NCBI GenBank assembly: GCA_037447605.1
Contig: CM074822.1
Location: 581,492-645,491, forward strand
DNA: 64,000 bases
DNA from: Zygnema circumcarinatum SAG 698-1b
Taxonomy: Eukaryota; Plantae; Zygnematophyceae
Reading direction: 5' to 3'
Under the pieces are notes generated by a model that ran no database searches, was not told the DNA's origin, and saw only the letters and a list, made by a program, of their open reading frames with translations. The number at the start of each line of letters is the position of its first letter. The stretch's first letter is position 1. The position numbers and the translations under genes are program-made. Shown piece after piece: positions 13,111-21,700 of the stretch.

Positions 13111-13399
13111 ATACATTGTGTATATGCTATTGAAAAAGAAGTGGCATTGGTCTCACAACATTGTGCACCACATCACTTGGATTGCTGCAAACAGTGTGCA
13201 GGCTCATCATGCGACATGTGGCAGTTCCCAACTCTGTGAAACACCCGCCCGCCTTTGAACGGAGCATGGAACGGGGAGCTGGCGATGTCCAGTTGCAAAT
13301 TCCCAGACGGAACTCCCAGTCGAATTTTCCATGGAACGCTCTTGAAGAGTGGAACCGCGCGCATGCCCATACCCATGTCCATCCCCACAACCATGTCCA

Positions 13400-13510
13400 T
13401 GTTCATGTGACCATGTGCATGTTCATGTGACTGTGTCCATGTTCGTGTGACCATGTCCATGTTCATGTGACCATGTCCATCTTCATGTGACCATGTCCAT
13501 GTTCTTGTGA
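13400..13510. repeat. Short minisatellite, about 20-bp unit CATGTCCATGTTCATGTGAC
   Basis: Direct reading. Confidence 0.8.
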
Positions 13511-14138
13511 ATATGCAGTTATTCATGCCACAAATTGCCACACATCCATTTAAAGCAGCATCAGGTCTCAAATGGTTCAGACGATGTGGCACTGACATTG
13601 ATCTGGCGATGGCTGCACCATGACACGTGTACATGGACAAAGGCAATGTGAATGAAGCAATGTGATCGGGCCACAGGTGATGATGATATATGACAGAAAA
13701 GAAAACAAAAGGCTGTGAGCGGATCATCCCATAGCAGGACTCCCATGGCGACATCATCCTCTGCGCTTCCGCCATGGGAAGGCAGCAGCCAGGAGGCAGA
13801 GCTGCACATCGCCAACTAATCCCAACCCTAACCCTAATCCTAACCCTAACCCTAACCCTAACCCAACCCGCGTTGCAGTCAAAGCCTGCAACTCTAAGAG
13901 CGCCATGACGACGTCTGTCTACTCCTTTCAGACAGCCTCGTCTTTCACTTCCCTCAACCCTCTCTACTTCTGCAGGACGCAGCAAAAGACATCTCAGCGG
14001 ACCAATGTTCAACGACCAATGTGAATTTCCGGAGGGGCATCATCATCGCCAACTATAAAAGAATGCAGGTTTGCTACAGCGATGCTTTTCAACAACAAAT
14101 GGCAAAGTCTCTATGCTGTCAATAACACTTGATATACG

Positions 14139-16953
14139 CTAAGCTGCCTCCTTTCGCCATTCTTCCTTCGTGACAAGCCCTAATTCAGCGTTCACAGCCT
14201 GGCGAAGTTCCTGCCCAGCATATGATGTCTCATCAATGTCAAGTATTACAGCAACTCTGTGCATGGCGTCATCCCACTGCGTCCTCTGCGGCGGAGAGCT
14301 CTGCTTAAAAGTTGAGGTGAAAGACCTAGAAAATGTATGGGAACCCAAACCAGATAGTATATCCGTAGAAGGTGGTCTGAAGCCTGACTTGAATGCCTCA
14401 CAGACGGACTCACTAGCGGAAGCAGTCAGATTGAAAGTATTCTTCGGCAGTCCGCCTGCTGATGATCCTTCATTTTTCTCGAAATATGGCAGTTTCTGCA
14501 AGTCGCCGGTTCTCTGAGGCAGGTTTCCCAAAGGTAGGGCAGGAAGCTGAGCTGTTCCAACAGATATCTCTCTCTCTCTCCCTCCTACATTCTCTTCCAC
14601 CTCTTCCTCTTCCCGGCACGGAATCTCTTGTGTATGGACCCATCCCCAGCTCACTCTTTTGCTTTTGCTAGACGTTCGTTCAATCACAGTTGTTGGCGCA
14701 CTTGTTTCTCCCTCTTCTGAGTTGGAGGGACTCGGTTTTTCAATGCGTAGAATGGGGCTAGGTTTCGGACTGCAACTTCTGACAGGACTCAAAATTCTTG
14801 TGGTGATTTCACTCCTTTCCAGCAGTGGCAGAGGCAGCTTCGCGAAGCTCTCCATCATGTCTTCCCTAATTTTTAGGGTTTGCTGAGAATTGAGAGATCT
14901 CGTTGTTGAAGTTTTCACATCCTGCTCAATGTTTAGAAGGTCATCCACATTCCTCGTCCTAATTGTAATGGTTTCTCCATTCTCCACATTTGCCGTGCCC
15001 TTTTTTTCAACAATAACGCTCTCCTCCATCCTTTTCTCCTCTCCTTCCTGTACTTCATTTCCTGCAGCTTTTTGAGGCACCCTCGCTTTCACTATTGGTG
15101 GACTACTCGCCCCTGTTGCAGTAAAGTCACTTCGGAACTCAGAAGCCGAAATTGCAAAAGAGGTACGCCTTGTCCTGTGGCTGTAGTGCCCTGATCGGGT
15201 ATAGGCACCCACCTCTCCTCCACCTTGTGTCACTACCTCCTCTCTCCCACCAGCTACCCCAACCTTCGTTTGCGTAACTTCAAAAGTCTGTCCACGTATG
15301 GCAATGTTTCTTCCATTGCCTTCCATTCCTTGAGCAAATTCATTCTGCATTTTCCCTTCCTCCCCATCCTCGACATCATCCATGCTAACGCTAATTTCAA
15401 ACTTGCTTTCCTTTAAAAGAACCTCCCTCCCTCTCTCCTCTTCTTCTTCCAAACTTTCCCTCTCCGATTCAACCCTGACCTTTGCATTAAACTCAGCCAT
15501 TCTCTGCTCCGATCCATTCACCAGAGCAGTAGACATTTCTGCTTCAGACTCTTCTCTTTTCTCTGCAGAGACCTGCACTTCAGCCTCTTTATGAGATGCT
15601 AAATTCTGCTGATTCCCGGATTGCTTCAACATCCAAGTACTGCTGGTTTTTATATACATTCTTGCCCCTGCCCGGCCTACCCCTTCCAATATCCTGCCTT
15701 TAAAGCAGGGCCTTGATTGCCGAGCCCTCTCTTTGACCCACCTGGGAACAACAACTGCATACTTATCAAAGCTCTCATCTACTCTATGCTGATCCATCTC
15801 CTGCTCAATTTCATTCCCACGTTGAATATGAGCATTAGGGCTATGTGGTGTGCAGCTACTCGAGGTCGGAGTAACCCTTGATGAAGTCATTGGAGAACCC
15901 TCCGAAGCTCTCAGAAACCTCTTTGGCATGACTTTAACGAGACGCTGCCAGCTTGCATAGGACTGGGCTATGACCACCATAGCGAGTGCTCTCTCTGCCA
16001 CGTGCTCGTTCAGACCGAACAAATTTTCTGGCTCTCCTGCATACAAACAAACACAGAGAGAAAGGTGAAATTTTTGACTCAGAACACGAACAAAACACTC
16101 GTTCTCAGTCATCTTCAATCACTCAGAGCCTTATTCAACAACTACAAGTACTAATTAGAACAATAATACTATATATACTTCAAAAGAGCCCTAATCTGCT
16201 GCTGCTGCTGCTCTTTAAGCATATACCTCGCTTCACGCATCGGCAGACTCGCAGCCATTCCCGAACCTCCTCAAGCCTGAAAGGCATCTCCCTATGCACA
16301 TCATCCACATCATGCAGCCTCTCTGCCGCCACATCGTCCAATGGGATCGCGAGAATCTGCCACGTCAGCTCCGCCTGCACGGGGTCCACCACAGCAAAGG
16401 CCCCCAACACCTTCACATTGTAGACCTCCCCTCTCTCCCTCCCCGCCGCCCCTATCTCCACCACCTCCATGGCCTGCCCCCGGTAAGGGAGCCCTCCGAA
16501 CTCAGAATTGACCTGCTTGGGATCGGCCCATGTCTGCGGAAGGATGCCAATGTTCCATGGAGCTGGATGTGCCAGGACTCCCTCCTCCTCTCCCTCTCCC
16601 CCCTCCTCTCCCACCCCCCCTCGCTGCTTCACCTTCAACAGAGGCTCCTCCTTTGCAAACATGCGATTCTCCCGAGTGCCACGTGGCGTCTTACAGATCA
16701 GATTGAGCCCTCCCCGAGAGCTGTAGAGAGGGATGACATGCCATGGCGATGTGGGCTCTCGCCCTCCTCCTCCTCCTCCCCCTCCTCCACCTCCCCATCC
16801 TCCACCTCGTCCTCCTCCTCTTTCTCCCCCTCCTCCTCCTCCTCTTTCTCCTCCCCCTCCCCCCCCCCTCCCTCGTCCTCTCCCTCCTCCTCTTTCTCCT
16901 CCCCTTCCTCCCCCCCCTCCTCCTCCTCCTCCTCCTCCTGCTTTCCCATCCAT
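14139..16953 (-). CDS. Family I soluble inorganic pyrophosphatase-like protein (catalytic residues lost) with a long disordered C-terminal extension
   Basis: Exons 16953-16227 and 16036-14139 (phase 1, GT-AG). Colinear with eukaryotic/plastid sPPase: SPWHVIPL, WNIGILPQTWADP, EVVEIG, LAIPLDD, GEPENLFGL, SWQRLV. Confidence 0.85.
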
Positions 16954-17762
16954 TGAAGGGCTTCTCCTCCTCGTTGCCCGCCAAAGACGAGGCTCTATGG
17001 CTCCTTACGGATTTATAATTACGTTTTTGAATGGGAAGTGTTTTTATCTAAAGTGGGTTCTTGTTGAATGGCCGTTGAAGGGAAGATTAAACGGACTGAG
17101 ATTTTGGGGTGTCTTCCACGAATTAGGGAAGGCAAGGGAGAGGGAGGGGGAGAAGGAGTGTGAGGAAGAGACAAGGAGAGGGAGAAGGAGAGGGAGGAGA
17201 GAGAGAGTGGAAGAGGGGGAGGCGACGGAGAGGGAGGAACGGAGGGGAGGGAGAGGGGGAGGATATGAGAGAGAGAGAAAGAAAGAGAGAGAGGGAGGGA
17301 GGGGTGGTGGAGTGGGAGATAGAGAGAGATAGAGAGAGAGGGAGGGAGGGGAAGGGGAAGAGGAGATAGAGATAGATAGAGAGAGAGGGAGGGGAGGGGG
17401 AGGGGGAGGGGGAGAGAAAGAGAGAGAGGAAGGGAAGGCAGGGGGAGAAAGTGATAGAGAGAAATAGAGAGAGAGGGGAAGGGAGAGTGAGAGAGAGATA
17501 AATAAAGAGAGGGAGGGAAGAGAGGGGAAGAGAGGGAGAGATAGTGAGAGAGGGAGTGAGGGAAGTGAGCGGGAGGGAGCGATAGAGAGAAATAGAGAGA
17601 AAGGGAGGAAAAGTGAGAGAGAAATTAAGTTATAGTGGGAAGGGAGGGGGAGGGATAGAGAGATAGGGAGGGAGAGAAGGGAGTGGGAGAGAGCAAGAGA
17701 GTGAAAGACTTAGGGATAGAGAGGGAGGGAGGGAAGGGAGAGGGAGAGAGAGAGAGCGATTT

Positions 17763-17801
<39 letters not shown>

Positions 17802-17849
17802 GGAGGAGGCGGCTGACGCCGTCGGACCCTCGGCAACTGCAGCGCGCCA

Positions 17850-18310
17850 AACAGCGCGTGACGTGACATCATCGTAGTCCACGGAGTTGCCACGTGGCGT
17901 CGCGGCAGCCGAGGACTGCCATGTCGGCAGAAAGCGACAACCGGCCCGGTCGGTGGCGCGCCACGTGGCAGTGGCTGAGACGAGAGTACGAATTTCAATG
18001 ACACGTCCCGACAAAGTCCCGATATTTTGTCGTTTTCTGAACTACCGTACCGTACCGTACAAATCGCACGAGAAAATTTTAAGCAATAAGTACGTGCCAC
18101 GTGGACGCGGACTTGTGGCTGCACCGATGGGCGCCACGTTCGTTTTCTGTCGTCTAGTGCCTTAGCGAGCTAACTTTCCGGTACCAAGGGTACGGACGAT
18201 TTCTGTTTTTCAGATAGACAAAATAATCGTTTCCAAATCGTAATTTTTTTTTTCAACTGGCCAATGGAGGTGCCCCACGTGTGCAATCGTGCCGACGTGG
18301 CCGATCCATG
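17850..18310. promoter_or_regulatory. Divergent promoter region (PPase-like / MiaB) with a G-box cluster
   Basis: Multiple CCACGTGG/CACGTG motifs between two head-to-head start codons. Confidence 0.4.
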
Positions 18311-18705
18311 GTGAGATTATGGAGAATCTTGAATATGGCTCGCATCTCAAGAAAGACCCAAAAAAAAAAAAATCGAATTTTGGGAGTCATTTCGTTGGTC
18401 GTTTCAGCCAATGAAGACACGACACCTGTGCATTTTTAAACGTTCCAAGGAGGTTTATTTGTCTGGAAAACCGTCCCAGTTGCAGTTGAACGCGTTTCTT
18501 GAATTTTTATGTGAGTAGTTACATGCGGTTGATTACGCTAAACAGAACTGTTGGTTCATCATAGATTAATTGTTAACTGCGCTGTAACTGTAACTAAGAC
18601 AAAATTTTGGCACGGAAACAGTTTGCCTCCCTCCGGGGCCCAAGTAAAATTTGAAAATATCTCTCTTATCTGTCTCTTGCTCTCCTCCATCCCCAGCTCT
18701 CAGCC

Positions 18706-21700
18706 ATGGCGGCTGTCAAGGCGGGCAGCCATGGCTTCCAGCTTGAAGCAGCTCTCGCTCCCTCTCCACCTCCTCTCTCTCCCTCTCTCCGCCTCCCCTC
18801 ACATCCGAAGCTCATATCAGCCTCAGTCGCTACCCGCGACCTCTCCACATCTCCATATCTCTATAAACACAGACATTCTGAGGGCCTCACATCACCCCAT
18901 ATGTCTTCTGAATTCCTAAAAAGCTGCACCTATTTAGGAAAAGAGAATGTTTCGACTAGAGGTTCAGTAATTCGTCGAAGAAGAGCAGGTTTTAGGGTCT
19001 CTGCCTCTGTGGTTCATGAAGAAACCCTAGAAATGGCTCCAGCAGGAGCTTCGTCTGCAGACTTTTGTGGGCCGGAAGGCGTTGTTTTGAACCGGCCGAA
19101 AATTGGGACAGTTCAAGAGAACAACGGAAAGCTTTATCACGTGCACACATTTGGGTGTCAGGTGAAGGAATGCTTGCGTTCTTCCTGTTCAAACATTTCT
19201 ATGCCTTTCAGAGATTTTATGGTTTTTAGGGTTGTCTCTAACACTGATTTTGATTCAAATTCTTATAATTGAATGCGGACTGAATGATGGACCATGCACG
19301 TGCAGATGAACATGGCAGACTCAGAGCGCATGGCTGGCATTTTGGAGAACTTGGGGTATGTACATTCGGAAGATGCGAACAAGGCGGACCTCCTCGTCTA
19401 CAACACGTGCAGTATACGCGATAGATCGGAGCAGAAGGTGAAGTTTGTGAGCGGAGCTGGGAGAGAGAGAGAGAGAGAGCGAGAGAGAGAAGAGAGAGAG
19501 AGAGGGAGGAAAAGTGTGAGAGAGGGAGCGGGGGGCGGAGGGGGAGGGAGAGTGGGAGGGAGGGAGAAGGGGGTGGAGGGGGAGTTGGGGATCAGGTGAT
19601 GTCCATGGGCAAAGGTCGGTTCATTAGAGGAGTTCCTTATTGGCCTATAAAAGCTTGGGGGTATATTTTGGCTCTTGTATGAAAGATCACTTGCTTTCTA
19701 CATGCAGATGGTAATCCTGTACTCTTTCATATAGTATTGGGCCGCTTTTGTATATGCTTGTTCTGTGTTGAGTGCATCGCCTATAAGCATCAAGATATCA
19801 ATAGACAGATATCAAGATATCATAAGATATCAATGCCATTGGTTGGCTCGATGTTACAGTGTCTAGATACAGGCAATATCAATCAACTTCGGCGGTTTAA
19901 AGAAGATGTCCAGGAAGTAAAAGCTGGCTTTGAGTACCAAGTTTAAAGTGGGGTCCATTATGGAGAGCTGAAATTGGTTCAACATTCTCTAAACTCATGC
20001 ATTGACGCTTTTGGGTTGAGAGGGGCTAGTCACAATCGCCACCCTTTTATACTTTGAGATACGCCTTCCTCTGCATACAACGAAGCTGCCTAGAAATGCC
20101 TACCCCTAGACTACTCTGCAGTCCCAACTTTCGGAATCTTGTACCTTGCTTTGCTTGACACTTGCGAAGTTTCTCCAATGGCTGTCTGCCAGGTGTACTC
20201 GGCTTTGGGTCGCCAAAGAGCGCGAAAGCGGCGAGATCCGAATCTTCGCATTGTCGTCGCGGGGTGTGTGGCGCAGCAGGAGGGGGAGGCGCTGCTCCGG
20301 AGAGTGCCGGAAGTGGACCTTGTGATGGGGCCACAGCATGCCAACAGACTGCATGAGCTTTTAGAGCAGGTGGGGGGTATTATGATCACACACAATACTA
20401 TCAGTTACAGCCATATAAGCTTTGTTTTTCCAAGCTGTAATAGCAACTACAGAACGGGCAGCAGCTTCCTGCATTTAATAGTAGGAGAGAGTGAGGGAGA
20501 GAGGGAGAGAAAGGGAGCGAGGGAGAGAGAGAGGGAGAGAGAGGGACCGAGGGAGAGAGAGGGAGAGATAGAGAGGGAGAGGAGGGGAGAGAGAGGAAGG
20601 GAGAGAGAGGAGAGAGGGAGAATGAGGGAGGGAGAGAGGAGAGAGAGAGGGAGAAAGAGAGAGGGAGAGATGGAGGGAGAATGGGAGGGAGGGCGAGAGA
20701 GAGAGAGAGAAAGCGAGAGAGAGGGAGAGAGGGGGGGAGGGGGAAGCGGGGAGAAAGAATCGCAGAGTGCTCCTCTTTCTTCTTCCGTCAAGGGTCTGTA
20801 AATGTAGATTTCAGTACACGGGTATATGATACCAATACCTGCTTTGGTTTAACACCTTTTAACTTAGGTTTCCGCTTCTCACGAAAGCTTGTCAGCGCAC
20901 GTTTGTTACATACATATTATTGAATAATTCAAGCTGTGAACGGAAGAACTTGAACTTGATAGCTGACTCATGTGTATTACACTGTTCCTATAGGTCGACC
21001 TGGGAAGCCAAGTTTGTGCCACAGAACCAATTCACATCATGGAGGATATTGCGAAGCCTCGGAGGCAAGGCTTTTCTTTTGCCAGCTCTTTGTGAATATT
21101 CCAAGTATTGACTTTCTAGACATAGAGAGTGAGAGGGAGGGGACGAAGAGCGAGGGCAGGGAGATACGAACGGAGGGAGAGGGTGAGTCTGTAAAGGGAA
21201 ACGAGCGGTAGAGAGAAAGAGTGAAGGGGCAGAGAGAGAGAGAGAGAGGAAGGAGAGCGACGGAGAGAGAGGGGGGAATGAGTAAGAGGGAATGGGAGAT
21301 GAGGATGGTGTCAGTATTTGAAAATTGAGGTGGACCTGATCGGATTTTAGGGTTTGTCTGTTCACAGAGACTCGCAGGTGACCGCATGGGTGAATGTAAT
21401 TTATGGTGAGTGGGTTGCTTTTCAGGAAATCGCTTTCCTGTGCATAAAAAGCTCCAATAATATGCTTTACTTGGCATGTCATGTATGCATTCAGCATCTA
21501 GTTATGAATTTGAGAAGCTAAAACACGTCGTTTACATGTACCCTAAGAACCCTAAATACCCTTAAGCTCCTCTATAAGTTATTCTTCTTCTTCTTCTTCT
21601 CTTTCACGAATGCTTATTTTGCTTATTTTTTTTTTTCCTTAACTCTCACTGTTGGGGAGGCTGGTCCTGGTGAAGGCTGCAACGAAAGGTGCTCCTATTG

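Follow-up and report, generated by a model that had tools for sequence, protein, structure and literature searches.

The window that we analysed is a stretch of 64,000 nucleotides from the conjugating green alga Zygnema circumcarinatum SAG 698-1b (contig CM074822.1, positions 581,492 to 645,491). On its minus strand, at 14139-16953, it carries an intact two-exon gene whose spliced product has 874 amino acids. The head of this protein has the fold of the family I inorganic pyrophosphatases (PPases) and has kept a single one of their 13 catalytic residues, and its long, predicted disordered tail contains a conserved patch that may dock protein phosphatase 1 (PP1). We think it probable, if with some reservation, that the protein is a non-catalytic family I PPase paralogue that serves as a scaffold docking PP1; four other explanations were judged less likely. 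The preliminary description of this DNA, made from its letters, had proposed a PPase pseudoenzyme and had treated the gene as a one-off. The first of these claims is borne out by the residues that are left, by the confident structural model and by the PPases among the structural matches, whereas the gene turned out to belong to a large expanded family.

A PPase fold with replaced catalytic residues

Several searches identify the head as a PPase. As the database searches and the structure predictions were done exon by exon, their results apply to the individual exons. The part of the PPase-like domain that is encoded by exon 1 (residues 65-242; 16228..16761, minus strand) matches Pfam PF00719 with 46.3 bits against a cut-off of 23.5 (E 5.3e-12). 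With phmmer, the structures of human PPA1 and yeast IPP1 were matched at E 1e-21 to 1e-18 (human PPA1 1e-21), and the whole set of solved human, yeast, Schistosoma, Toxoplasma, kinetoplastid acidocalcisomal and Plasmodium PPases at E 1e-21 to 1e-14. The AlphaFold model of these 178 amino acids, built from an 84-row alignment, reached a pLDDT of 89.2 and a pTM of 0.85, and the top 50 Foldseek matches in the PDB were PPases only (TMq up to 0.81; 0.78-0.81 for 5wrt, 6c45 and 2ik4), with 29-32% identity over the alignments. The sole part of the domain modelled with low confidence is a Gly/Glu-rich low-complexity insertion (16576..16641, minus strand; pLDDT 56, residues 48-52 below 50), which according to the alignment with human PPA1 stands in for the hairpin that bears R78. 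The domain is completed by the C-terminal PPase helix at the start of exon 2 (residues 244-276, FGLNE...SWQRLV; 15936..16034, minus strand; pLDDT 84-91): BLASTP aligns this segment with the corresponding C-terminal helix of PPases, active as well as dead ones, and no variation is seen in its G, N, E, W and Q among four relatives. The intact fold claimed in the preliminary description is thus well supported; the AlphaFold model that it had named as a check confidently shows the OB-like beta-barrel of the PPases, and the structural motifs that it had quoted (PWHxIPL, LPQTWxDP, VVEIG, LDD, FGL, SW) are present.

The N-terminus differs from that of the eukaryotic enzymes. Their N-terminal beta-hairpin (YRV.L...G...SPWH) is gone, and about 60 Gly/Arg-rich residues are found there instead (approximately residues 5-64; 16762..16941, minus strand), a low-complexity region of the RGG/GAR type that is translated from a GGA-type repeat. 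This region resembles the GAR domain of the H/ACA subunit GAR1 only weakly (E 1e-4), and the match is driven by composition. A search for an exon encoding the hairpin in the upstream DNA (16960-21000) returned chance-level matches only, and P0015, the closest relative, also lacks the hairpin and begins directly at the barrel.

To place the catalytic positions, 165 domain segments including an active reference were aligned with MAFFT and the positions were read off the reference; the assignment was checked with a HMMER alignment. The residues E48, K56, E58, R78, Y93, D115, D117, D120, D147, D152, K154, Y192 and K193 of the yeast enzyme correspond to K88, N96, M98, G125, I135, R158, Q160, E163, D190, T197, Q199, C237 and R238. 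Accordingly, 1/13 catalytic residues is kept (D147), two replacements are conservative (D120E and K193R), and the charge summed over the 13 positions changes from -3 to +1. The active matches in the same table mostly keep 13/13 residues, and a few keep 11-12 or are incomplete. The replacements listed in the preliminary description (CKTP for VEIP, WNIG for WNYG, YRGQAME for GDNDPxD, DPVQAELTWQ for DEGExDWK and VCR for DYK) are seen in our alignment. Its reading of KME as RMF was correct in that both K56 and E58 are lost; the register, however, was one residue off, with N at K56 and M at E58 in both alignments.

In PPases, these 13 residues hold 3-4 Mg ions and pyrophosphate. Since 12 of them have been replaced, the head very likely has no PPase activity, and the automatic annotation as 'inorganic pyrophosphatase' is almost certainly wrong for such genes. 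The replaced side chains and the altered charge suggest that the head is most likely a binding module: the PPase barrel would have been kept in a form unable to bind the metal ions and the substrate.

Gene structure

The preliminary description had assumed an uninterrupted reading frame of about 870 amino acids. There are, however, two open reading frames (ORFs) on the minus strand, 16953-16180 (257 amino acids) and 16118-14139 (659 amino acids), which are parted by an in-frame stop inside a 190-nt intron, and the 874 amino acids are obtained only after splicing. Exon 1 (16227..16953, minus strand) starts with the ATG at 16953-16951, upstream of which an in-frame stop is located at 17007-17005. 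Its coding sequence covers the Gly/Arg-rich N-terminus and the larger part of the PPase-like domain, and it ends inside a Gly codon, after the first base. The intron (16037..16226, minus strand) is of the GT..AG type (GTATAT...polypyrimidine...CAG), in phase 1, and contains in-frame stops. Exon 2 (14139..16036, minus strand; stop codon 14141-14139) encodes the last PPase helix and the tail. Splicing from 16227 to 16036 in phase 1 restores both the reading frame and the PPase sequence: exon 1 ends with ...WLRVCRCVKR-G, and exon 2 continues with EPENLFGLNE...SWQRLV.

The splice model is supported by the comparison with relatives. L001, a gene of another alga (Logan run SRR9302961) and the single relative with genomic DNA in the intron comparison, shares both the position and the phase of the intron. 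Moreover, the spacing from the first Cys to FGLNE after splicing is 12 residues, as in the transcript-derived P0013; in P0022 the same 12 residues are counted from the aligned position, which is occupied by Arg. Exon 2 is free of stops over 631 codons while the other five frames contain 13-48, corresponding to a chance of 5e-17. The GC content at third codon positions is 0.69 in the head exon (16228-16761) and 0.45 in the tail exon (14142-16034), and the GC content of the intron is 0.36.

A family of dead PPases in conjugating green algae

When 1.84 billion representative proteins were searched with the 178-amino-acid domain, 1233 matches were obtained, 18 of them with E <=1e-30. If a dead domain is defined as one that keeps <=6/13 catalytic residues, 59 dead-domain proteins are found among the best 150 of the 1233 matches, and many of them are 700-2000 amino acids long. 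In a maximum likelihood tree, a single branch separates the 59 dead domains from 25 active PPases (SH-aLRT 88, not starred); a core of 56 dead domains is supported by an SH-aLRT of 96, and the gene studied here clusters with P0015 and P0108 (SH-aLRT 91). The named members are all from Zygnematophyceae, i. e. Mesotaenium endlicherianum (ME000565S08349) and Closterium NIES-53, -54 and -64 (e. g. CAI5973334.1). Judging from the tree and from this distribution, the family is of single origin and has expanded in the Zygnematophyceae. Many other members are complete ORFs from Trinity transcriptomes (EukProt P0015, P0022), which indicates that relatives of the gene are transcribed.

The gene is an ordinary member of this family with respect to the residues that the family itself conserves: at the columns conserved in >=70% of the members, with family-specific residues such as C.TP.G, G.VY.VK, AF, S/T-W-K and WLR.C, it keeps 37/43, which is the family median. 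The position of Y192 is occupied by Cys in 34/59 dead domains, and Cys-x-Cys in place of Tyr-Lys is found in 19/59, including this gene (CRC).

It is likely that the gene is maintained by selection. The preliminary description had called it purifying-selected, and the support that we can add is indirect: the stop-free 631 codons, the canonical splice sites, the shared intron of L001, the family-conserved residues and the single origin of a family with transcripts all fit a gene under selection. Closterium NIES-53 and NIES-54 (P0101 and P0156), the only pair with DNA, are too similar to be informative in this respect: dS is 0.015, and the domain shows one synonymous and no non-synonymous difference.

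No second PPase-like copy was found in the window by tblastn, and a scan of metagenomes with the domain gave 160 pattern matches and no relatives. Among kinases and phosphatases, pseudoenzymes are a familiar phenomenon; our literature search, however, yielded no paper on a natural pseudoenzyme family that derives from a soluble pyrophosphatase. The Zygnema genome paper (PMC11096116) mentions that the GO term 'pyrophosphatase activity' is enriched in orthogroups specific to Zygnematophyceae. This enrichment may partly reflect dead proteins of this family that were annotated as enzymes.

Other arrangements of PPase-like domains were also seen among the matches. P0005 (5113 amino acids, NCBI source, on an 18.7-kb contig) has 19 matched PPase-like stretches in tandem, of which the aligned ones keep 2-5/13 catalytic residues. 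P0006, P0017, P0023 and P0123 have 2-4 tandem PPase-like domains that keep 10-12/13, with Y192 changed to Leu or Phe. The deposited gene model of L003, a dead-PPase relative (Closterium sp. NIES-54, CAI7737114.1), has a C-terminal Reticulon domain (PF02453) that is absent in the NIES-53 orthologue; this may be a merged gene model.

The tail and its conserved patch

The domain is followed by about 598 amino acids, in agreement with the tail of about 590 in the preliminary description. The AlphaFold model of the tail exon, based on a four-row alignment, has a mean pLDDT of 41.6, with 518/631 residues below 50, and the tail is predicted to be intrinsically disordered outside conserved islands. 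With the 631 amino acids of the tail exon as query, a word search gave no homologue at E <=1e-3; accordingly, the collection searched contains neither the protein of this genome itself nor a close orthologue. The product of the exon-2 ORF was also looked up as an exact sequence, and no record was returned. The tail contains no Pfam domain, NCBIfam gave nothing, and nothing was found in an Rfam search of the window.

An alignment with the tails of P0015, P0022 and L001 showed two islands of conservation, and no others, beyond the PPase helix. Island 2 (residues 338-354, VPRWV..RA..SRPCF; 15702..15752, minus strand) aligns in all four tails with the pattern VP.W...RA..SRP.F; its A, R and P are invariant, and it is modelled as a weak helix (pLDDT 53-60). 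The putative PP1-docking patch of the RVxF type (residues 700-717, KSKRVSWGWVHTQEIPCR; 14613..14666, minus strand) was identified by pattern and by conservation. The stringent RVxF pattern, which is reportedly from Meiselbach 2006 (a reference confirmed in PMC6544628), reads [HKR][ACHKMNQRSTV]V[CHKNQRST][FW]. It is matched only once in the tail, by K-R-V-S-W at residues 702-706 (KRVSWGWV...EIP), in a patch that is basic on its N-terminal and acidic on its C-terminal side. The sequence KRVSWGWVHTQEIP of our gene corresponds to PRVQWGWVETLEIP, RRVSWGWVEEREIP and RKVSWGWVEEVEIP in P0015, P0022 and L001, and V, W, G, W, V, E, I and P are invariant in the four proteins. The patch is thus kept in three relatives although the rest of their tails does not align, and its score in P0015 and P0022 was reached by 0/300 shuffles of each tail. 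The surroundings have pLDDT values mostly below 50, with isolated residues just above. At the level of the family, a strict RVxF-type motif is present in 9/31 long tails against 2.1 expected, and 0/500 shuffles reach 9. Other branches of the family have a canonical RVxF motif with Phe, followed by a V.V stretch (RRVHFKDTVQV, PRVKFNEEVNV). It is a serious, if still doubtful, possibility that the patch docks the catalytic subunit of PP1.

Two further elements of the tail can be described. A candidate basophilic Ser site seen in the translation (residues 529-539, HRTRRTSFAIS; 15147..15179, minus strand) is unconserved in the four-tail alignment and does not fit the canonical 14-3-3 mode I pattern. 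At the C-terminus, a module of about 45 residues is predicted to form three short helices (14142..14276, minus strand; pLDDT 63-80); no counterpart was found in the relatives, by word search or in Pfam, so that it is so far particular to this copy. A pattern scan of the tail found no canonical 14-3-3, SILK, MyPhoNE, KEN, D-box, PxIxIT or LxVP motif, and for 14-3-3 neither R[SFYW].[ST].P nor R..[ST].P was matched.

Neighbouring DNA

Upstream of the start codon, 16960-17400 and 17630-18124 form a long CT/GA-rich low-complexity tract. The ORFs in this tract and those antisense to the Gly-rich N-terminus (e. g. 16733-17332, plus strand, poly-Pro/Ser) look like repeat artefacts. Further upstream, an ORF on the plus strand (20139-20798) matches Pfam UPF0004 (PF00919, E 5e-11), the N-terminal domain of methylthiotransferases of the MiaB/CDKAL1 type, and probably represents an exon of an adjacent gene. 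Just downstream of the stop codon, at 13173-14012 on the minus strand, an ORF of repeated VRVRV and HGHMNMDMV units without a Pfam match probably reflects tandem repeats in the DNA and not a coding sequence.

Discussion

The combination of a head that has kept the barrel and a tail that bears short linear motifs, of which the RVxF-type patch is the best conserved, is what leads us to favour a scaffold. If the RVxW patch recruits the catalytic subunit of PP1, the protein would be a PP1 targeting or regulatory subunit with the head as its binding module. It is tempting to speculate that the Ser at the x of RVxW is a phospho-switch. The preliminary description had spoken of a scaffold in general terms; the conserved patch would provide this idea with a concrete handle, even if the docking is deduced from the motif.

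Some observations weigh against this explanation. By our own arithmetic, about 7% of tails with this size and composition should contain a stringent RVxF match by chance, so that conservation has to carry the case for docking. Of the long-tailed family members, only about one third have the strict motif, and the WGWV of the patch can also be read as the WxxV core of an Atg8-interaction motif and holds WG/GW dipeptides. With its four rows, the alignment of the tail makes the AlphaFold model correspondingly weak evidence for disorder. L001, with about 46% identity, is too distant from the gene for a meaningful dS, and no listed run containing the stretch was recorded as RNA. Finally, E58, D115 and K154, which are kept in most family members, are gone from this copy, and this could mean that the constraint on the old active site has been relaxed.

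The last two points also speak for a young decaying duplicate in an expanding family, free of selection and not yet broken. Its active site is the most degenerate in the table (tied with four others), low-complexity GGA/GAG expansions have occurred at the N-terminus and within the domain, and no close orthologue was found in the databases searched. We nevertheless regard such a duplicate as improbable: the frame of 874 codons is intact, the tail has remained stop-free against the chance given above, the splice signals are canonical, and the number of family-conserved residues equals the median. Moreover, both islands of the tail have stayed conserved between proteins with heads of only about 45% identity, and the terminal branch of 0.72 is ordinary for the family. 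Another explanation concerns the patch, and according to it the protein would be an adaptor for autophagy or for small RNAs. WGWV fits the [WFY]xx[LIV] of an Atg8-interaction motif, an acidic run follows the patch, and the WG and GW dipeptides, which could form an Argonaute hook, are invariant in four relatives. The N-terminal flank is basic rather than acidic, however, there is a single WG/GW unit instead of a repeat array, and the other branches have RVxF with Phe and neither Trp nor Gly at this place (RRVHFKDTV, SRVRFNDEV), which fits the PP1 reading only. We thus give an adaptor of this kind little credence.

The remaining explanations concern the head. The preliminary description had suggested a regulator of active PPase, and the dead head might indeed pair with an active family I enzyme at the dimer interface and modulate or relocate it. 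Eukaryotic family I PPases are established homodimers, active paralogues are often regulated by pseudoenzymes, and the barrel is well preserved. Trp52 of the yeast enzyme, which we take to be a dimer-contact residue, is Gly at the corresponding position in our protein and in 88% of the family, and the N-terminal hairpin is missing. In addition, dozens of fast-diverging paralogues in one genome are ill-suited to the control of one or two housekeeping enzymes, and nothing in the tail points to PPase. We find no support for the suggestion here and consider it unlikely. The head might also have acquired a new chemistry or a new ligand, with a neutral-to-basic pocket and Cys-x-Cys in place of Tyr-Lys binding an anion, a metal or a redox signal. 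The reversed charge of the pocket, the frequent Cys substitutions described above and the residues that the family conserves on its own account (T25, G28, Y114, F122 and L170) are in line with this idea. The pocket residues vary widely between members, however, which is unlike a conserved catalytic or ligand site, and no second set of invariant polar residues was found in the family columns; we see only a slim chance for a new ligand of this kind.

Returning to the scaffold that docks PP1, it is tempting to extend the idea to the whole family. A housekeeping PPase may have given rise to a large and fast-diversifying family of PP1 regulatory subunits in the conjugating green algae, with the dead barrel as a module that recognizes substrates or ligands, possibly phosphate-rich ones that are left unhydrolysed, and with the RVxF motif recruiting the phosphatase; in this copy, the RGG N-terminus and the C-terminal module would be further targeting devices. 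We put forward this extended scenario as a speculation that is rather unlikely to hold in all its parts. The conjugating green algae are the sister lineage of the land plants. If the tail motif docks PP1, phosphatase-targeting subunits would have undergone a lineage-specific expansion in the algae closest to land plants, and this would bear on the elaboration of signalling networks before plants moved onto land. As a separate observation, mammalian PPA1 has been reported to act via the dephosphorylation of JNK (PMC3633968). If that effect is direct, a PPase fold can engage phosphoproteins, and this may be a lead to the partner of the head.

Three known systems can be compared with the protein. 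With the family I PPases such as yeast IPP1, human PPA1 and the plant plastid PPa6, it has in common the fold, the elements SPWH..PL, PQTW.DP, VEIG, the W at 153 and DD.D, and the C-terminal helix; it differs from them by the exchange of 12/13 catalytic residues, by the absence of the N-terminal hairpin, by the Gly/Glu insert in place of the R78 hairpin and by the addition of the 60-residue Gly/Arg N-terminus and the tail. With the dead PPases of the conjugating green algae, it shares the clade, the family-specific residues, the layout of a head with a long tail, the RV.WGWV...EIP patch and, as far as L001 is concerned, the intron position. It keeps 1/13 catalytic residues, however, whereas the members typically keep 3-5, and its Gly/Arg N-terminus and C-terminal helical module were not seen in its relatives. 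A precedent for the proposed function is the pseudo-tyrosine-kinase-like protein pTKL of Plasmodium, which docks PP1 in an RVxF-dependent manner (PMC6544628). As in the protein described here, pTKL combines a dead enzyme fold with an RVxF motif in a low-complexity region, and a scaffold function has been proposed. Fold and lineage of the two proteins are unrelated, and PP1 binding has been demonstrated experimentally for pTKL whereas for the Zygnema protein it is suggested by the sequence.

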